Shown piece after piece: positions 6,865-64,000 of a stretch of DNA of 64,000 nucleotides. The notes below the pieces were generated by a model that worked only from the letters and a program-made list of their open reading frames with translations, searched no databases and was not told where the DNA came from. Within the stretch, counting starts at the first letter, position 1. Each line of letters begins with the position of its first letter. Origin of the DNA: Entomortierella parvispora E1425 (Eukaryota > Fungi > Mortierellomycota); contig BQFW01000004.1 of the NCBI GenBank assembly GCA_020891255.1, positions 1,116,001 to 1,180,000 on the forward strand, read 5' to 3'. Position numbers and translations under genes: made by a program.

Positions 6865-8821
6865 TCCTGTCTACTAAGGTGTAATAGACCTGACTTGTTT
6901 GCGAGAGAGGAGGAGCTGGGAGAAAAGCAAGGGAGAAAGAACTGACCACCTGCAAAGGGGCTCAGAGGAGCAGGGCGACTACGGTGGCGATGAACGGACA
7001 AATGCAGAGGGCGTGATACTATTGAGGCGAGCAAACAGTGGATCCGGTTTAGTTTCAAACACTTTTCAGGCAGAGGGAGTGGACAGGGATAAGGAGATGG
7101 AAAAGTCGCGGTGCAATGTTCGAGGGGCGGGGGAGCAGGATAAATAACAAAAGGTGGGTGGAATAGAGAAAGGATATGTCCATATGTCCTGAAAGGCAGT
7201 GGACCATTACACCAAGGTCTGACCATAGTCCAAAGCGGTGCAGAGAGGAAGGAAGGAGGAGAAATTACGAGGCAACGGCGCCAGGACAGCACTGGATGAC
7301 CATGGGATAGTACGATGGTAGTGGTATACAGTCTTTCGATGCGTACGGGGTGAGGACAGACCGACGGCAACAAGGCGCAGGGGCCAGTCGACAGGGGATG
7401 CGTTTACGTTGCAGATGATCAGGGATGAGGTCAACATGATTTACCTTTGAGCAATGAGAAGGAAAGGAGGGGTAGAGGGTAAAGTCGAGACCCCAGGCTG
7501 GTTCCAGTCCGATCCGCGCAATGCAATGTGCGTGCAAGAAGAGGCGCTGGATTGTTGTTATTGTTTTGTTGCCCAAAGGAAAAAAAGAAAAAAACAAGAA
7601 TAAGGACAAAGAGGGCAGAGAGCGAATCGAATCAAAAGGTGAGGAGAACAAGGAAAATAAAGAATATCGTAGCAAAAGAAAACGTGTGTTCGAGTGTCGT
7701 CTGTCTGTCGTGAAAGTGAGGGGGGGGGGGGTCGTTAATTGCAGAGATGAGCGAGATGGATGGTCGTGATGAAAAGGACAACAGGACAGCAAGCACCGAT
7801 GGAATGAAAGAAGGCTTTGCCTCTCTTTGTCTGTCGGTCGGTCGTGTGTGTGCGCTGAGTGTTGTGTGAGGTGCGAGTGAGGGGTGAGTGAGGTGTGCGG
7901 TGTGCAAGTGAGTGAGTGGTCGTGTCCCTCGGGCACAGAAAAAGACGCCTGTCGGCGCTCGGTTGCTTCGTCGCTGCGTTGCTTGCTTGCCAAACGGAAG
8001 CGATAGCGACAGATCCGTGCCTGATCTCTGTTGCTTCCCTGTTCGTTCTTCGCTTCCTTGCTTCTTTCTCGGACTCGTCTGTCCTGCTCAGTCTGTCTCT
8101 GTCTAGCTTTAATCTGCCTGCGAGCGAGCGCTGGGAGCGGAGGGTGCGACTGCAACTGCGGGTAAGGACAGGCGGCAGTGAGGAAAGACTTGTTAGTGAG
8201 CAAGAGGGATGCAAAGCGACGACCAAAGGGGGAAACAGAGGTGGGCAGGCAAGGAGGGATCGAGGTGGGGAGTGCGAGCGACAAAAGAGAAGAAAAACGG
8301 ATTCGCCAAACGTTTTGTTCCTCCTCCCATCACTCCGCACACCTCCATCCTCTCAATCCGTTGACCGACATGGCAGGAACCAACCCAAGCTGTTGCTCTC
8401 TACTTCTCTTTTGCTCTCCCGTTTGCCCACAGTTCATGTGCAATTTTGCTCCATCGTCATTATTGTCCCCAACAGCAATCGACTGGGTGTATGTGGTCTA
8501 TCTCCGATGCACATGAGAGCACTTGCCCTCTCTTTCTTTTCCTTCCTCTCTTGCTGTCGTTTCACGGATGGCTCAGTTTTTTTCCTCGCCTCTCTCTCCT
8601 TCTCACCGTTGCTGTCTGTGCGCACGCTGACATATATAGAGATCTTGCCACAAATATCCATACCTCACAAAACCTAAATTCTCACACCCCTCTGCCTTTT
8701 TTTTTTCTATTCTCTTCTGATTTTAAAAACTTCATTGACTCTAAACGATGTTCCATGATGGACTGGACTCACTGGGGTCATGTCTACTGAGAACAATGGT
8801 ACTGAAAAAAAATAGAAAATA

Positions 8822-10291
8822 CTATGCCTCCTCGTCACTAGAAATTTCACTGTTGTCTGTGTCACTATCAAATTCGCGGTCATCATCGTCACTTTCACTG
8901 TAGTTTTCATTGTTTTCGAGTCGTCTTTCGTAGAGAATCCGATAGTCCCTCCCAACCTGGACAGTCTTTTTCCAAACAGCAATAAGCTGTGACTCCTGAA
9001 TGCCAGCGAAGAGTCCCAAAAGGCGGTTTCGCAGTGACAGCTCAGTCTCGTCCAAGTTAGGATTGGCTGCAATTGGGTTCTTGACCATTCCCCAGACCAT
9101 TTCAATCGGCTGTAGCTCGCAATGATACGGAGGTGTCTTGCAAATGGTGTGTCCGTATTCGTGTGCAATTCGGTATGAAGCAAAGGTCTTGGGGATGTTG
9201 AGACCTTTGATGTGCTCAAGAAGCTCGAGTCTAGACTTGATCTTGCCCCGGTCATTTGTTGGTAGCTCTATGCCATTCTTTTCGAACCACGAATGGATAT
9301 CTCTCACACAGGAGCTTGCTTTCGGTACTGGATTCTCTTCGCGGACATGGTACTTGGCGCCATCCATGTGAATGTGACAAGGCCCATAGTCTTCATGGAG
9401 TGTTGTGCACAGAGCCTCAAACAATCGCTCAAACAGATCCGCATCAAAGTTACCGTGGTAGTCATGGTAGTCAGGGGCAATACCCGCCTCTCGGACAAAA
9501 TCAGGAACAGTCTTCCATAGCTCGTTGTCTGCGGCACGTCCACCCTCTCGACCACGCAATTGACCCTTGACCGGCCAGATGAGGATGCTTTTCTTGACGA
9601 GCTCTGCCCTGAGCTTGTTGTCAACTCGGAATACCACGAATGCACCGAAAATGACAAGCATTGGCTTTCGTCCTCGCTCATTGACAGAGCCTCCAGAAGG
9701 CAACCATGTCCGAAGACTGTGATGGTCTAGATGACAATATGACTCATCAAGGAACACCTCAGGAACAATTGGAAGACCCTTGGGGTTCAGATTCGAGAGG
9801 CGACGCTCGATGTAAACATCACGATAGTCGATCACCGCTTGGGAGTCATGGAGGATATTCCTCCTGCTTCCTTTGCCGTAATGAAGACCTAGCCGTTTTA
9901 ATCGACGGACCAAGGTTCGCTTCGCGAAAACGATACCGTGTTTTTCCCGCAGCTCCTTCAAAACTAGATTCGTTGTCACAGGCACTCCATCTTTGTTGCA
10001 TGCCAACACAAATTCTCGAATGGCTGCGCCCAAGTCAGTCTCAATGATGTGTTTTGGTCGACCAATGCGTTTCTCCGAAACCTCCCCCACGCCGTTATAA
10101 AACTGAATAGCTTTCCGCGCCGTATCTGAACCGATCCCAGTTATGAGGGCAAGACGCTTGCGGGCGGTGACTTTGCCACGGTGCTCGTGGAAGGCCCCAG
10201 TCCCATTCAAGTAGCTTTGGACGTTCGCCAGAATGCAGTATTCATTACGAGTCAGTCGTGCTGCATTCCGTTTAAATCGAGGATCCGACAT
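8822..10291 (-). mobile_element. Intact intronless IS630-Tc1-mariner superfamily transposase with DD86E catalytic spacing (Sailor/DD82E-like)
   Basis: 489-aa ORF from ATG 10291 (MSDPRFKRN). HTH-like N-terminus. Catalytic motifs FLDES (D at 9746-9748), HMDGAKYH (D at 9362-9364) and PPYHCELQPIEMVW (E at 9101-9103), with 86 codons between the second D and E. No terminal inverted repeats found by eye. Confidence 0.88.
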
Positions 10292-34206: not shown

Positions 34207-35952
34207 ATGTCCATCCTTCGCTTGACGGTCGCTCTTGCGGCTGCTGCCCTCGTGACTCCCCTGTCAACGGTCGCGGCTAAAGGCCATGTCGCTCCTTCAG
34301 ACAAATACCGCATTGATACCAGTAAACTCCCTCATATCGACCATGCATTGAAGGCTCTTCCTCAGTGGTCTGGGCAAATGCCCGTCGGTACCAACAACAC
34401 TTTGTTCTTCTGGTACACCCAAGCTGCCAACGTGAAGTCTGACAACTTGATCTTCTGGCATAACGGTGGTCCCGGATGCTCCTCTCTCGAGGGTCTTTTC
34501 GAGGAGAACGGTCCCTACCACACCAGCGATAACGGTCGCAGCTGGTACATGAACCCCCACTCGTGGCACAACTTGGGACATGTTGTCTACATCGACCAGC
34601 CCTTTGGAACTGGCTTCTCGTTGAACCAGACCACAGTCCCCACCGAGGATTTCATTGGTGATACCATGGTCCAATTCTACAAGAACTTCTTCAAGGCCTT
34701 CCCTGGGATGCAGTCTAAGAACATGTATATCACTGGAGAGAGTTACTCTGGTCGCTATGTCCCCTACATGGCTAAGCATGTCTTGTCGCACAACAAGGCT
34801 GTCAAGCACTCCAAGGACAAGATCAACTTGAAGGCAATTGCCATCGGTGATGCCTACATTGACACCTCCGTCCGCAACGACTTTATTGATTTATTCCCTT
34901 ACCTCCAGGAGCACCCCTGGATGGCAGGAAACAACAAGACTTGGTTTGTAAGTAGCACATCATCACCACTTAGGCATTTCGACTACATTTTTTTCTTCGT
35001 CGAGAATGTGGCATTTACAAGACAAATTCTCTGGATAATAAAAAAAAAATAGGCTGAAGCTGAGAAGCTTGTTGCTAAGGCTGCCAAGTTGCCAGGCTGC
35101 GGTGGCGCAACGTCCGAGAAGGATATTACCAAGGAGTGTATCGATTTGGAGAACAAGTTCTACAACGACATGTCCAACCCTGTCAATTTCCCTCTCTCCA
35201 TTAAGTAGGTGTCAAACACATGAAATATGTCTCTGCTTATATGGTAACGTCTGAATGACCCTCCCTCTAAACGAGTGATCCCTTTTACATGATCTTTAGC
35301 TGCACAAGCCAGAATCAACCTTTGTTCTACGACCCTTACAACATCGCCATCACTGACTGCCATGAGGCCAAGGGCGACGACAACCTTGTTCAGCTGCCTT
35401 GGGAATACTACCTCAACGTAAGCGAAATAACGATGGCTATAAACCTTTGTCCGTCGTTCCCCATTGACACTATCCATGGACTCACACGAATGTTTATTTC
35501 TCTTGTCTCTTCAGCTCCCTGGCATCCAGGACACCATTCACGTTGGCGCCCATACTAAGTATGTTGACTGTGGTGGCAACGGCAAGGGTATCTACCGCAA
35601 CGACCCTTCAACAGTCCCTAAGTACTTCATCGGAGACTTGATCGATCAAGGACTCAAGGTTACCCTGTACACCGGACTCTTGGATTCCGTTGTTCCCCAC
35701 ACCTTGACCGAGGCTGCTCTTCGTGTCATGAAGTGGAAGGGTCACAGGGGTTTCCAGCACACTAAGATGACCCCTGCTACCATGACCCCTATCAAGGTCC
35801 CCGGCAACAAGGAGAAGAACATTGGCACATACCATTCGGAGCGTGGCATGAACTATGTTGTCTTCAACAACGCTGGTCACATGGTTCCTCGCGATGAGCC
35901 AGTTGGTGCCTACTGGATGATGGAGAAGATTGTCCTATTCAGGAACGACTGA
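34207..35952 (+). CDS. Secreted serine carboxypeptidase (peptidase S10), multi-exon
   Basis: Signal peptide; WHNGGPGCSSLEGLFEENGP, YIDQPFGTGFS, catalytic GESYSGRYVP, LYTGLLDSVV and AGHMVPRDEP. Confidence 0.95.
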
Positions 35953-36042
35953 CGTTCTGTCACCAAAACACAGTCCGTGGTTAGTTTCCATGTTTACAAT
36001 TTCAGTAATTTGGATTCAAAATTTAGAATAAAGCTATTCAAC

Positions 36043-37780
36043 TTACCGCCCTGTGGAGCAGGCTACAGACACAGGGTGTGTGTCTCGCGGCCGAGTAGTG
36101 TAGCCGTTCTGGTAGGCAGCACATGCCGTGTTGAAACAGACTTTGGATCCGTTCACAGTTACTGAGTCGATGGTCCTGCCCTTTTGAACGCACCGAGTGG
36201 GCTTTCTCCAAGCAGAAGCAGCATCGCTGCGTTGACAAGTACTCATCCGTTACTACAACAGTCCCGACCTAACGATGTTGCTTCCTGATGTTCTTGCCAC
36301 CTAGGCGATAGTGGCCACCAACCCTGGATCCAACACCAGTGCTAGCGGCACCCATGAATATCACATGGCGGACGACTGGGGTTGTCTAACACAATGCGTA
36401 GGAAGCTTGTATGGAGCAGCGATGTTGGACTTGGATATTTCGATGCGACGACAGTTGGAGCAATAGCCAGAAGCTGTGGGGTATGCTGACGAATGTCCTA
36501 TCTTCAGCATCTCTCCAGCGGCGAGGGACATAGGGTCGCAGAAAATTAATGATCTTCTGTGCGACAAAGAGTTCCCGGTCTGTAAAGGAGGCTCCCTTGT
36601 ATAACGAGTCCCTGATGTGATCCATACTGAACGTTGGTGTCAGTAATGGAGACTCGAGCAAAGTCCAAATGACGGTCTGCAGACGCGGAAGGGCCTTTCG
36701 ACTCGGTTCCTTCTCCCTGACGTCAGTCTTGAGGGTAATTGGACTACTCTGACTTGATTCATCTACATCCATGACCCACTCCGTTTCGAGTTCGTCCGCG
36801 AAGGCTTGACTCTCAAGGAGGCACATATCGAGATCATCGCAGGAAAAAACCTCCTCTAAGAACACGTCCTCCATATTCTCATCATCCACCAGGTCAACAT
36901 CCGACTCCAAAAGTCCAGCCTCAGAGATCCTCTAAAATGATTAAACGTCTTTTGTGAAATCTTCACCAGCACAAGCTTGAGTATCGGTAGTATCAGTCTT
37001 ACCAAGATATTTCCAAAAAATCTAGTAGCTCAGTTTTCCTAGTGCTGTCGGCATTACTCCTTTTGATACGTGGTCTTTTGTTGGCCCGGAAAGTAGCATG
37101 TTTGTGGAGACATTTCTTCGATTGGTTGCGGTAAGGCCAATTCGTTCGCTGGAGCAACAGCTAGTTCCTCCAACTTGTCCATAGGGGCGAGGGCCAAAAA
37201 TTCGGCAAATTTGAGGTACGAATCCACTCTGTGAGAGATTCCACAGATTGAATGTGGAGACAATGCCTCTGTCTGGGAGAGAATGTCCTCGGTGCGCCTC
37301 GGCAGGAAAATAAAAAGATTTTGCAGTTGAGTCTGTCTGCCAGGTAGACAAGCAAGAGTTGCGCTCTTGTGGGGACGATCATAGTCGAGTTGTTGCTGTT
37401 GTTTGTAAGGTGTAAGTCGAACTGCCCTCCTGGCCTCAGAAAATGTTGGATTATGAAGTGGGCTAAGGAGTTGTCTAGGTCTTCAGGATTGACATCAACA
37501 CGGTGTCCGCAGCTTCGAAGAGCCAGCAAAGCTTTCTCAGTCTGTTCTCTACAAGACTGTAGTCTGGACTCCTTGGTGGCATTTTCCAGACGAAGTATAA
37601 AGTCGGATGACGGCAGAGACCTGGAAGACTGGTGACTTTTGAGTACGATGGCGCGCGACAATGTTGAATGAGAATGTCATTGCGCTGGAGTAAATGGTTG
37701 CTGATTTGGACAAGGTTCGGGCTGAGCGAGACGTTTGTTGCTTCAGAACATGCGGACATTTGAAGCGCAGGAGAGTCACT
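36043..37780 (-). pseudogene. Decayed, internally deleted Fanzor1 relic (same subfamily as the 59.6-64 kb gene)
   Basis: KEPSRKALPRLQTV...QKIINFLRPYVPRR matches LEPTGKHLRGLEAV...QIVNQLRPYAPKR of the 59.6-64 kb gene. Then SGYCSNC, VIFMGAASTGVGSRVGGHYRLGG, an in-frame TAG (36269-36271), TDEYLSTQRCCFC (RuvC-II, E at 36242-36244) and VNGSKVCFNTAC...TRPRD (RuvC-III, D at 36082-36084). Several frameshifts; the RuvC-I region is absent. Confidence 0.85.
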
Positions 37781-59578: not shown

Positions 59579-62500
59579 CTAAACCACGTTTAGTTCGTCG
59601 TCGCATCGCCCGGATGGATTTGGAAGTTGTGTTTCCGGTCTTGTTGATCCGGTGTTGGTGAGGGGGTGCGACCAAAGTCGCTTGGTGGTTGTGGAGAATG
59701 GAGGGAGTGTGGTCCTCTCGGTAGTGGTAAGCTGGGTGTATCCGGCAACGGCGATGTTGAGGGCGGCATTTTGATCACGGCCCCTGATCGTATAGCCGCA
59801 ACGATGCGAAATACACTCAGGATTGGTACATTCCACGGCGCCATTCAGGCGAACGAGCTTCATTTTTCCCTTCTTCATCCTCCGGCCTCGTGCAAGTCGA
59901 ATTGGCCTGAAGCAAAATGGGCAGGTTTTTGATGAGTTGTGCTCATTTGTTTTACCCACTGGCCCATGGTTCTTGTGTCTGCGGGGTATTTCGTTCCCGC
60001 CCATCCTACGGTTTCCCTTTAGTCTAGAGCCTACCCCCATGCCGGCAGCCCCGTGCAAAAAGAGTGGAATGACCACTGGCAGAGATTTTGGACAGTTTCT
60101 CAGGTGTTTCAGGACAAGTCGTTTTCCTGTCGGATGGGTCGGGTCTGCAACGAGTTCCGGTCTGTGGTGGGTTCCACACGATGAACAAAAGCCGTTGGAC
60201 TTGCGCTGAGCTGCTGCAAGTGATATCGATGACAATGGTGTGGATGACAGATCTGTTGCGATTTCCTGACCCGTCGCCGCCTGATTGCCTAATGAACACC
60301 CCATAGTAACAAAGATCTTGGATTAGTACGACTGGTGCTAGGGAGCACTGTAGTAGTCTGAACATTAGTCGGCTTACCCTGACCCAGTTTCTTGAACGCT
60401 TGTCGCTCTTTGGATGCCATGTGGTCATACGTCCGTTTCAGCCGTCGTGCGACATTTCTTTTCTTTCTGGTCATGCTTTTTGAGTACTCAAAGGCGCGGA
60501 GTCTGTCCCTGGCTTTTCGGCGGTTCGTGGCGGACTTCTTAAAATCGGCGACAGTCCTTGCTTTGTGAGGAGAACTTTCACCCAGTTCAGAAAACAGGGG
60601 CTCAATGTGTTGATTTCTCTCGAGTGCGCTCTTTCTGGTCTTTGCCTGTTGTGTGAGTCCTGATAAATGGCGGATATGCGCCACGGTCGTTTTGTGGGCA
60701 TCCGGAATTTTGATCTGGGCGAGCGCCCCCTTCCTGCTCACTTTCAGTGCCTCCTCAAAGACATTCTGGTCTGCGATAGCCTCTGGAGGGCTTCAGATTC
60801 ATCCGAGAGTAGATGGAACCGGTTCTGAAGGCTGATAAGAGTTGATTCAGATATGACTACCGTCTCGAAGAGAGTCTTCGAACCAGGGTCCGTTCCTCCA
60901 GGAACCAGAGTCATCTGGCGGGTGCTCGTCCTCTCATTGTTCGCGGCAATATCCTCTCTGAGTTTGCTGATGCATGTAGCTTCAATATAATCCATTGACC
61001 CTGGCCGTGCTCCAGAGGGCATCGATGTGTATGGCGACTTTGGAGATTCCGTAGCGCTGGTGGTGACATTGACATTGACATTGGCGCTGGTGCCATCAGT
61101 GGATGTGGATCCAACCCTTGTAGCAGACCTTTTTCTCCCCTTTGATCTAGCACGCGGCGACGACGTCGAAGGTGTTGTCGAATCTGCTTTCTCTCTCGAA
61201 TACTTGTTCAGTGCGTATTTTTCTTCCTTGAGGTTTTTGATTTCCAGTACCAGTGGAACTGTAAGTGCTCGAGTGCTCTGAACAAGTTTGCGTTGCTCCC
61301 CCAAATCGCGGTAGGCTTGCTGGATAGACTCTGCAGTGACCGGTTCTGGAGTACTATCGTAGACGCCTTCATCTACTTCCATCTCCACCTGTTCAGCTGA
61401 GATACGACCAGCATCGGCCACAACTTCGTTATCCACGTCCATGGTTTTCAGACTTGCCATACGATCATACATGGTGTTACTCAAAAGACATTGGCGCTTT
61501 GTCTGCTTCGTCACGGTGCGGCTAAGTTGTCGAAGCTCGTTCGTCTTCACCTTCAGAGCCTCCTCAACCTTTTGAGCGAGTTCTTTGGCCCTCGCTGCCG
61601 AGATACCTGACGATATGAGATCCTGTTGGCGAGAGGGATGTTTGGAGCTGGCCGGCGGCTTGATGTGCTTCTTTTTTTCCGACCACAAATCTGGCGCAGC
61701 TTCTTTCATTGTCTTGGAAGCAAGGATTTGCACTGTCCAGGGATTGACATACTGGAGTCTAGAGTTGGGAGGAGAGTGGTAGAGCTTTGTCAATTTCAGA
61801 TTCCTTATTCCAGTGCACAAAATAATCGGAATAGCCCTTACCTGTTTTCGAATTTAAGGTGATGTTTCCCACAGATGTCGTGTATGAGTTCCAAGTCGAA
61901 AAATGCGCCGAGAATAGTCTTCTCGTTGTTTTTCACTCGGTTCACATATGACACTGTCATGCCGTTGCTCTTAACGTCGAAGTGCCCTGGATCTTCTGCA
62001 CACAATACCTCGCAGATCCCTTTCGGGTTCAGTGGGAGTGGGTGAGATTTGCCACATGAGGGAATTGGGAACAACCGACGAGTGAAGTCGGAAAAGCCCA
62101 TTGCGCGCAGTAGGTGATTGGCGAGCATGCAGAAAGGGCCCAACACGAGAATATGTTCATGTAGCTTGTTTTCGTCATCTCGTTTTGGAGCATAGGGTCG
62201 CAGTTGGTTGACAATTTGGACGACCGTGCTGACTTCAGTATCGTTGAACATTCCCTCATCAAAGAGGTATTCACGAACGAATGCCGGCGTAACCTGAGAA
62301 GGGCAGTCAGATTTGTCAAGCAAGAGGCAGGTGACAGCCTCCAGCCCACGAAGGTGTTTGCCTGTTGGTTCCAAAGCATCTACAAAACAAGTCGTTATTG
62401 TTAGGGCGACATCTGAGTTTGTGATGTATTTCAAAGCCAAACTTTTTTGCCTTACCTCTGACGACCTCCGGTTCGGGTGCTGATTCCGTCTCTGCCTGGT

Positions 62501-64000
62501 CTAAGCCGTCTTCCTCTTGACACTCGCCATCAAAGTCGTCTTCCTCCTGAAGATCACACTCGCCATCAAAGTCATCCCCTTCCTGAGCCAACTCTATGAT
62601 GTCGTACGAAGTCGGAATTACTTCGCTGTTGCTACTTTGATCATTGCTACCGCCCCGGTCAAGTTTGAGCTTGAGATCACCAATGTCCTTATCTGCAGCT
62701 TTGGTCTTGTCAACAACATCTCTGAGCAGTCGGAAGACGTTGCTGACCCTAGCAATCCGGGACTGCCTATCCTTCAAGTCGAGAGGATCCCGCAACTCCA
62801 AGATGTTACCATTCCAAGCCGTCTTGCAGGTGCTAATGGCCTCGTCCAGTTGAACAAGCACCTTCTTTGCTGTCCAGCGGTAGGCTTTTCTGCGCACATA
62901 CGGACTTTTCAATTTCTCGGCTGCCTCTGACGCCTTGTTTTCCGCGAACCTCTTCTTCTGATCTCTATATCGCTGCTCCCCAAGCGGTCGAAGATGAAGT
63001 CGCAACAAGTAACGGACAACCGCCCGTTTGAGGACGAGATATAGCTTTGCCTTCCAAATGTTATGGTAGCTGGTCGCAATTGTCTTTAAGACCTCTGGGG
63101 GTGATTGAGACATGCCTTTTGGGCATACAGCATTCGTGGCAAATTCATCATCTCCACGCCACGCTTGTCGGACGAAAGCCGCCAATTCGTTCCAAACAGG
63201 GTGCGTCAAAGCTTTTGCGGACTGGCTGGCATTGGTAGAAGGCCGTTGGCGCTTGGTGCCTGCCGATAACGATGGCTTTGTTAGAGTGCTTGGACCAGAT
63301 TCGCACACGTCGTGGTCATCTTCCTCAGCATCTTGGTCAGATACTTCGGCGTCGCTACCATCTGAACCAAAGTCTTCGTTATCACTGCCAGGCTTCTGTT
63401 TCTTTTTTTGATTTGCATTTTTCGGAGACTTCTTGTACGAGCCGTGCTGCGATATACACGACACAATCGTGATTGAACAGGTCCTTGCTGTCCCTTTCGA
63501 ATGGTGACCTCCGAGCGTCCTCGTTACAATATCTCTTTAGGTTCAGCTGGAAATCGTCTGCAACCAGGGGGACTTTGATAGAAGGACTCTCCATGAGATC
63601 GGTATCGCGGATTTTAAAAGCCTCAGGGAGAATTTGACGAATATCGAATTCATTGGTAGAGCCTTGCTCGGAATGAAACCGTCCTTGCAGCACCTACAAA
63701 CCATAAAAGGATCACATACGGTCAATTGCCAGCTCATGATGCTCCACCTGTGCATGTCCATTCGTTCACTAACCTCTAGTTGGGCCATGGCGAGTGCCGA
63801 CTGGAGCTCCTCCATATGAGATGACATTGCTTCCTGTTTTTGAGTCAGCAATTCTTTGATGGCCGTTTTATCGGCATCTTCAAAGTCTTTTCGCAGAACC
63901 TTCTCTAATGGTACGGAGATGGTTCGCAGCTGGACCTCAGGCTCCTTCTCCTTTGGCACAGAGTCGGCCTTTGACCGGTTCTTGTTCAGGGCCTTTTGCC
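59579..64000 (-). CDS. Giant Fanzor1 (eukaryotic TnpB/Cas12-related RuvC) RNA-guided endonuclease-like gene; 5' end outside the window; two frameshifts
   Basis: Exons 64000-63774, 63693-62456, 62379-61842, 61758-60378, 60288-59579 (GT-AG introns of 80, 76, 83 and 89 nt), about 1365 codons visible. RuvC-I GGTDPGSKT (D at 60888-60890), RuvC-II KTNEHNSSKTCPFC (E at 59942-59944), Zn finger CPFC...CTNPEC, RuvC-III GRDQNAALNIA (D at 59774-59776). Frameshifts in 63382-63540 and 60744-60795. Confidence 0.9.

Follow-up and report, generated by a model that had tools for sequence, protein, structure and literature searches.

A 64,000-nucleotide (nt) stretch of contig BQFW01000004.1 from Entomortierella parvispora E1425, referred to here as the window, ends in a gene that resembles Fanzor1, the eukaryotic TnpB/Cas12-like DNA endonuclease with a single RuvC domain that is guided by an omegaRNA in its characterised members. 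Six-frame translation revealed seven successive open stretches on the minus strand, from 63998 down to 59582, and one reading was restored from them as five exons separated by four GT-AG introns and disturbed by two one-base frame breaks (Table 1). The spliced in-window model has 1,361 residues, with an X at both breaks and no other in-frame stop, and the reading passes the window edge at 64000, so that the gene start lies outside the window. When this model was aligned with P0155, a hypothetical protein of E. parvispora of 1,626 amino acids (aa), a single high-scoring segment pair (716 bits, 35% identity) connected window residues 8-1341 (1,334 residues) with P0155 residues 402-1599 and spanned all junctions and both breaks. 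Since this alignment begins at residue 402 of P0155, the window lacks approximately 400 N-terminal residues. Furthermore, L002, a metagenome contig, was colinear with all window pieces and carried introns at the same four positions, and branch sites of the CTAAC/CTAAT type were found in two of the four introns. These results bear out a preliminary description of this DNA, in which five open reading frame (ORF) fragments were joined across four GT-AG introns into a protein of more than 1360 aa with two indels; the indels are the one-base breaks.

Upstream of the nuclease domain, exon 2 encodes the conserved block H..W...G.S......AT...N.W...Y......R.LLR.HL.P..E, and exon 3 encodes a domain that is present in all family members, those consisting only of the core included, and that shares 30-50% identity with 14 long relatives. 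The RuvC-I motif LVPGGTDPG (D955 in the in-window numbering) lies in exon 4. In the last exon, the motif NEHNSSKTCPFC with E1241 is followed by S1244-S1245-K-T, by a C4 zinc finger (C1248/C1251/C1279/C1284, containing CTNPEC) and, 11 residues after the last zinc-finger cysteine, by the RuvC-III motif RGRDQNAALNI (R1296-D1297). The preliminary description had proposed an intact RuvC D-E-D triad, and all three residues are indeed present. However, the glutamate of E..SSKTC, which had been taken for the canonical RuvC-II residue, is an alternative glutamate, and the canonical position, 36 residues upstream, is occupied by a glycine (G1205). In Fanzor1, an invariant G and E are 36 residues apart (G500/E536 of SPu-1-1p; PMC3627910), and the 'rearranged' site of Fanzors has been described as Gly or Pro at the canonical RuvC-II position with a conserved Glu approximately 45 residues downstream (PMC10530073); G1205 and E1241 reproduce the Fanzor1 arrangement. 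The in-window model also follows the motif published for the superfamily in 2013, D-X(125,275)-[TS]-[TS]-X-X-[C4 zinc finger]-X(5,50)-RD (PMC3627910), with a D-to-SS spacer of approximately 288 residues against an upper bound of 275 as the sole deviation. In addition, the four predicted GT-AG introns are of the spliceosomal kind found in Fanzor1 genes.

Residue conservation was counted across a 46-row family alignment. The alternative Glu was conserved in every row that covers it (40/40), the canonical-site Gly in 38 of 39, the RuvC-III Asp in 39 of 40 and the RuvC-I Asp in 31 of 34, and each of the four zinc-finger cysteines was found in at least 37 of 38-39 rows.

Table 1. Features of the Fanzor1-type gene, its 3' end and its surroundings. 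Positions refer to the window unless a related locus is named.
Feature	Position	Strand	Description
Open stretches	63998-63546, 63693-63385, 63536-62319, 62500-61841, 61853-60747, 60792-60292, 60322-59582	-	seven, in order
Exon 1, partial	63774..64000	-	encodes ...LRKDFEDADKTAIKELL...AMAQLE; corresponds to P0155 402-466; crosses the window edge
Intron 1	63694..63773	-	GTTAGT...TTGTAG, 80 nt, phase 0; L002 intron at the same position; P0155 alignment unbroken there
Exon 2	62456..63693	-	frame break 1, acidic low-complexity stretch, conserved block
Frame break 1	63410-63404	-	one base, A7 run
Intron 2	62380..62455	-	GTAAGG...CTAACAATAAC...TTGTAG, 76 nt, phase 1
Exon 3	61842..62379	-	well conserved domain of ~180 aa, KHLRGLE...LRPY.PKR...FTRRL.P...GK.HPLPL
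Intron 3	61759..61841	-	GTAAGG...CTCTAG, 83 nt, phase 2; position matched in L002
Exon 4	60378..61758	-	long coiled-coil insert, Ser/Thr-rich linker, RuvC-I, frame break 2, helical region, in that order
RuvC-I D955 codon	60890-60888	-	LVPGGTDPG
Frame break 2	60791-60790	-	one base, beside CCC run (60790-60788)
Intron 4	60289..60377	-	GTAAGC...ACTAAT...CATTAG, 89 nt, phase 1
Exon 5	59579..60288	-	canonical RuvC-II Gly, alternative Glu, C4 zinc finger/TNB, RuvC-III RD, stop TAG (59581-59579)
G1205 codon	60052-60050	-	canonical RuvC-II position
E1241 codon	59944-59942	-	alternative Glu
Zinc finger/TNB	59923-59813	-	C4
RuvC-III D1297 codon	59776-59774	-	RGRDQNAALNI
Conserved intron-shaped 3' tail	59470..59573	-	ATTACG, then GTAAGTAT...CTTAAC...pyrimidine run...ACAG
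Putative 3' element end	59463..59469	-	...AG ACAC; similarity to L001, L002 and L006 ends there
Direct repeat	59354..59468	-	perfect 22-nt copies of CACCGCCACAGTGAAATGGTAT at 59468-59447 and 59375-59354
Fatty-acid desaturase-like gene	57353-58898	-	two exons; looks intact
Decayed Fanzor relic	36041-36931	-	exon-3-type domain and VVVTDEYLSTQRCCFC...RPRD; RuvC-I lost
Serine-carboxypeptidase-like gene	34207-35952	+	at least two exons
E. parvispora element copy	L006 7328-15466		
E. parvispora element copy	L008 5813-13933		
E. parvispora element copy	L007 1-12992		

The top Pfam match of the last exon was PF07282 (OrfB_Zn_ribbon, Cas12f1-like TNB; E 1.5e-5), at 25.5 bits against a gathering cutoff of 26.3 bits, and the same model was the top match in two homologues (19.4 and 22.0 bits). 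Searches of NCBIfam gave nothing usable, its TnpB model (guided_TnpB) being reached at E 0.5. No Pfam match at E ≤ 0.01 was obtained for twelve long relatives, and searches of PDB sequences with the last exon and with a three-sequence profile of it returned nothing relevant. When the profile of the whole family was compared with all PDB sequences, the best match was SpuFz1 (E 0.0088), aligned at DEYxTSxxCxxC, C.NP.C and RD. Pfam domains were likewise absent from the upstream window pieces, the L002 pieces and the N-terminal parts of six relatives as well as from the twelve long ones; therefore, no XPG/FEN1, transposase, methyltransferase or helicase module is assignable. FEN1 was also absent from the structural matches of the N-terminal P0155 model described below.

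The structure was modelled on P0155, the closest full-length relative, rather than on the broken window protein. Model 1, made with AlphaFold2 from P0155 residues 790-1626 and the 46-row alignment, reached a predicted local distance difference test score (pLDDT) of 76.6 and a predicted template modelling score (pTM) of 0.53. When model 1 was compared with the PDB using Foldseek, four SpuFz1 entries came first (E 1.5e-5 to 8e-5, probability 1.0), followed by PpFz1, a Cas12 type, GtFz1, further Cas12 types and ApmFz2, so that Fanzor1s stood ahead of Fanzor2. VIA-align superposed model residues 385-797 on residues 362-633 of SpuFz1 chain 8gkh_P (Z 14.9, 256 residues), with CasPhi (Z 13.4) and PpFz1 (Z 12.9) as further matches. 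The predicted fold of P0155 thus contains a RuvC domain with an inserted TNB zinc finger, and the structural comparison suggested in the preliminary description came out in favour of a Fanzor1. A long coiled coil spans model residues 244-345 and matched generic coiled coils only. In addition, a feature search of the ESM Atlas placed the family core beside clusters carrying PF07282 and DUF8286 (score 0.95).

Model 2, covering P0155 residues 1-800, was weaker (pLDDT 62). Its best PDB matches were the N-terminal domains of Fanzor1s, namely PpFz1 (Z 7.1, model residues 412-620) and SpuFz1 (Z 5.6, chain residues 18-148). These Z values are middling and the order of the domains is right; if the match is true, the Fanzor body may start about where the window starts and the protein would owe its size to growth between the N-terminal domain and RuvC-I, and this weak structural match hints that the WED/REC region begins in the partial exon 1. 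In AlphaFold DB, uncharacterised proteins matched both halves in the same order; one of them is A0A168HZD0 (1,154 aa), and from their accession series we tentatively take these proteins to belong to Mucorales. Beyond the window edge, an OTU-protease-like fold was considered for the N-terminal alpha/beta domain of P0155 (residues 26-187); it serves as a lead but was rejected as a claim: the Foldseek probability was at most 0.35, Z was approximately 3 and the would-be catalytic Cys is not conserved. We noted a conserved H..DS(F/Y) motif in this domain in the full-length relatives.

A search with the RuvC-I piece recovered a 494-aa E. parvispora protein and metagenome proteins. When a profile of the last exon was searched against 1.84 billion representatives, at least 419 clusters were assigned to the family at E ≤ 0.001, and 214 of these at E ≤ 1e-10. 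Its long members have 1,285-1,823 aa, and all ten whose names were looked up are listed as 'hypothetical protein' of Mortierellaceae, from Mortierella alpina, M. antarctica, Mortierella sp., Linnemannia hyalina, Gryganskiella, Actinomortierella, Lunasporangiospora and Entomortierella. The family is unnamed in databases because no curated model reaches its members. Together with the first rank of SpuFz1 in structure and profile, these records agree with the earlier description of an unusually large, spliced fungal Fanzor1 that would be labelled hypothetical. Shorter, core-only proteins begin at the exon-3 domain (P0010, 802 aa; P0067, 785 aa; P0058, 700 aa; P0125, 710 aa).

Fanzor1s are valued for their compactness. 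The majority of those described have 600-700 aa (PMC11423790), and they range up to approximately 800 aa (PMC10711439). In the giant family, approximately 1,180 residues precede RuvC-I, comprising an N-terminal alpha/beta module, long coiled coils and acidic linkers. We infer that the large size reflects mostly an expanded helical and coiled-coil region upstream of RuvC rather than a plain appendage, plus the N-terminal module of approximately 400 aa that lies outside the window. Among the searchable papers, we found none that links Fanzor to Mortierellaceae or Mucoromycota or that describes proteins of the giant family; the part of the PMC10432273 supplement that was consulted holds one ordinary-sized Mortierella Fanzor and none of the present accessions. 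In the catalytic exon, approximately 80-90% of the residues are identical among three lineages, and of the codons that specify identical residues only approximately 35% are the same, with synonymous sites saturated. Residues were kept while codons diverged; therefore, the lineage has long been under protein-level selection.

Fanzor1s are carried by eukaryotic DNA transposons, among them Mariner/Tc1, hAT, Helitron and others. The window, L001 and L002 copies occupy three different genomic settings that share no synteny: the L001 copy lies between photolyase and topoisomerase II, the L002 copy elsewhere, and the window copy directly upstream of a fatty-acid desaturase-like gene, presumably of the delta-12 type. 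Among the related loci of E. parvispora, we found three copies of a unit of approximately 8.1 kb that are 99.5% and 96% identical (Table 1). This unit has short inverted ends (TTGTGC...GCACAA), is flanked by TA and carries a helix-turn-helix (HTH) ORF and a DDE_3 ORF (PF13358, E 1.9e-17) upstream of the 1,626-aa Fanzor; it is an element of the Tc1/mariner type. Tc1/mariner carriage was already known for some Fanzor1s (PMC3627910, PMC10530073). The third copy is interrupted by a 5.4-kb insertion with a gene for a hAT dimerisation domain. No transposase of the HTH/DDE_3 type was seen beside the window, L001 or L002 copies. The window contains only a putative 3' element end, and the 5' end of the copy lies beyond it.

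The sequence past the stop codon is also conserved. The copies in the window, L001, L002, L009 and E. parvispora remain similar for approximately 110 nt past the stop, and the similarity ends near 59466, which corresponds to the terminus of the E. parvispora element. The conserved parts of this 3' tail are intron signals, that is, a donor, a branch-like site (CTAAY), a stretch of pyrimidines and AG, shared by at least five related loci, and the acceptor lies within 10 nt of the putative transposon end. In the E. parvispora gene model the tail is spliced, and the last exon consists of the final 9 nt of the element. The L001 ORF likewise crosses the tail; in the window and L002 copies, the donor site is preceded at 7-12 nt by a stop. 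As a separate observation, a perfect 22-nt direct repeat (0 expected by chance) begins with its first copy at the putative element terminus and has its second copy 93 nt downstream; it occurs nowhere else in the window and in none of the related loci compared. A stem-rich segment at 59290-59400 was considered and rejected, as it lies outside the putative element and its folding does not exceed the chance level (z -0.7).

Taken together, the motifs and the predicted structure make it likely that the locus holds one copy of a gene of the Fanzor1 family, belonging to a distinct giant clade of Mortierellaceae with structural relatives in Mucorales. Several results weigh against this interpretation. 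No Pfam, NCBIfam or PDB sequence match reached a curated threshold, and membership therefore rests on the motifs and the predicted structure. TM-scores to solved Fanzors were low (0.22-0.29), because only the RuvC/TNB part superposes. The joining of the exons and the expression of the window gene are deduced from homology; in four metatranscriptome runs, contigs did not cover the locus and a single 38-nt scrap matched. The transposon context was seen only in a relative at approximately 35% identity to the window copy. At the 3' end, RNAalifold predicted no pairs across five tails, single-sequence folds were no better than those of shuffled sequences (z -1.7 for the tail, -0.7 for the downstream segment) and the tail had no Rfam match. 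An omegaRNA at the 3' end of the giant-family element is therefore expected by analogy only. Finally, both frame breaks lie within homopolymer runs, where an assembly error is possible.

The two breaks are the sole defects in the window copy. Introns cannot account for the changes of frame: the open frames on either side of each break overlap, by only 30-45 nt, so that an intron does not fit between them. Both break sites fall within a continuous ORF in L002 (6475-7779 for break 1, 8565-9971 for break 2), and the corresponding exon-4 pieces D and E also form a single ORF in P0002/P0003. Their location in homopolymers is compatible with slippage mutation and with assembly error alike. We consider it rather unlikely that the gene is intact and possibly active, with both breaks being homopolymer-length errors of the assembly and the first ~400 codons lying beyond the edge. 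The A7 and CCC runs would suit such errors, and, breaks aside, no in-frame stop occurs over 1,361 codons, all catalytic and zinc-binding residues are kept and the splice signals are undamaged. However, uninterrupted ORFs of 490-843 aa are numerous elsewhere in the window, which argues against an assembly with indels as frequent as one per 2 kb. Breaks are also frequent among the relatives, each in its own way: L002 has its own in-frame stop in the exon-3 domain (8195-8197, where the window has Ser) and may be a decaying copy too, P0011/P0158 and P0156/P0157 of E. parvispora are split, and L001 is truncated, so that decay is usual in the family. Furthermore, no transposase is visible beside the window copy within the 64-kb window, its 5' end lying outside. 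Real decay is favoured because unbroken ORFs are many in the window and broken relatives are common, and the window copy is most likely immobile and decaying, probably one such member of a multi-copy mobile family.

It seems improbable that two genes were wrongly joined by homology-based models, an upstream accessory gene with exons down to 62456 and a Fanzor of approximately 800 aa starting in exon 3. The core-only proteins P0010, P0067, P0058 and P0125 do start with the exon-3 domain, the two parts meet in an acidic stretch of low complexity and the support for the junction comes from homology. However, P0010, on a 4-kb contig, may be truncated, and at least 10 independent gene models from several genera join both parts. 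Intron 2 is short and its phase is compatible with a join; no stop precedes it, and no start codon follows closely. In addition, residues of the upstream exons align weakly with the N-terminal WED/REC domains of PpFz1 and SpuFz1, which a complete Fanzor needs and which the region from exon 3 onward did not supply, and A0A168HZD0 matches both halves in order. It is most improbable that the locus is a domesticated, Fanzor-derived host gene with a cellular role and no remaining mobility, as strong purifying selection across genera, large conserved non-nuclease regions and the lack of an adjacent transposase in the window, L001 and L002 would suggest, given three related copies in unrelated neighbourhoods without synteny, copies 96-99.5% identical within one genome that are bounded by inverted ends and TA, the many broken copies, and catalytic residues that are all kept.

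A second, far more decayed Fanzor relic was found in the window (Table 1). The exon-3 domain of the main locus matches it at 36518-36709, and the relic resembles the subfamily of the 785-aa P0067 rather than the main locus. A serine-carboxypeptidase-like gene lies beside it.

A copy of a giant Fanzor1-family gene, as we read the locus, has its nearest characterised counterpart in SpuFz1 from the fungus Spizellomyces punctatus (PDB 8GKH, 9CEU-9CEZ), the best structural and the best PDB-sequence match. In both, Gly occupies the canonical RuvC-II site and the alternative Glu follows after 36 residues (PMC3627910). However, sequence identity is 11-16%, and SpuFz1 has approximately 640 residues in total, against 1,285-1,823 in the giant family, and approximately 360 before RuvC-I, where the giant family adds a coiled coil of approximately 100 residues and long acidic or Ser-rich linkers. 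PpFz1 from Parasitella parasitica (Mucorales; PDB 9CF0/9CF1) shares a Mucoromycota host, is a larger Fanzor1 with insertions, and, besides matching in RuvC, gives with its N-terminal domain the best, albeit weak, match to the region that the upstream exons of the window encode. The extra piece of PpFz1 is an insertion of approximately 100 aa in RuvC (FRI) that binds cyclophilin (PMC11423790), whereas the giant family is expanded upstream of RuvC-I. The Tc1/mariner-borne Fanzor1s of Bao and Jurka (2013; PGv-1, PUl-1, PUl-4) have a mariner-type transposase, short inverted ends and TA duplications, as in the E. parvispora relatives, and copies without transposase occur there too (PMC3627910). These are viral or oomycete elements with ordinary-sized Fanzors; in contrast, the giant-family gene alone takes approximately 5.5 kb and has a conserved intron-like 3' tail with its acceptor less than 10 nt from the element end. 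With bacterial and archaeal TnpB (e.g. ISDra2 TnpB) and with Cas12f (Z ~11), the family shares a split RuvC and a zinc-finger TNB between RuvC-II and RuvC-III. In contrast to TnpB, the family has another residue in place of the canonical RuvC-II Glu, eukaryotic introns in its gene and a protein 3-4 times larger, and no significant sequence match exists between them (E 0.5). The giant family differs from every described Fanzor1 in its size, in the conserved residues upstream of RuvC-I (~1,180) and in its terminal intron.

By analogy with SpuFz1, PpFz1 and GtFz1, a protein of the giant family would bind RNA transcribed from the 3' end of the element into its flank, and the RNA-bound protein would cut matching DNA beside a short motif; such cutting would help the transposon to persist. 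A more ambitious proposal, which we hold to be doubtful, is that the giant clade is functionally distinct: the long upstream region would add an activity or a targeting absent from compact Fanzors, and the terminal intron would couple splicing to the production of guide RNA, for example if an RNA scaffold within the 3' coding region were spliced straight onto the element terminus and the flank. In the searchable papers, we found neither such an added upstream function nor such a coupling of splicing and guide described for Fanzors.

The window copy adds little beyond one more aligned sequence, and attention is better given to intact members, for example the 1,626-aa protein of E. parvispora. 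The family itself is worth following. It offers a defined transposon context, Tc1/mariner with TA, and an unusual, conserved terminal intron where one would expect the guide RNA. Fungi maintain many copies of Fanzor1 relatives of two to three times the usual size, and do so under strong selection. The giant family also offers a natural experiment on the additions that a TnpB-type core can take.

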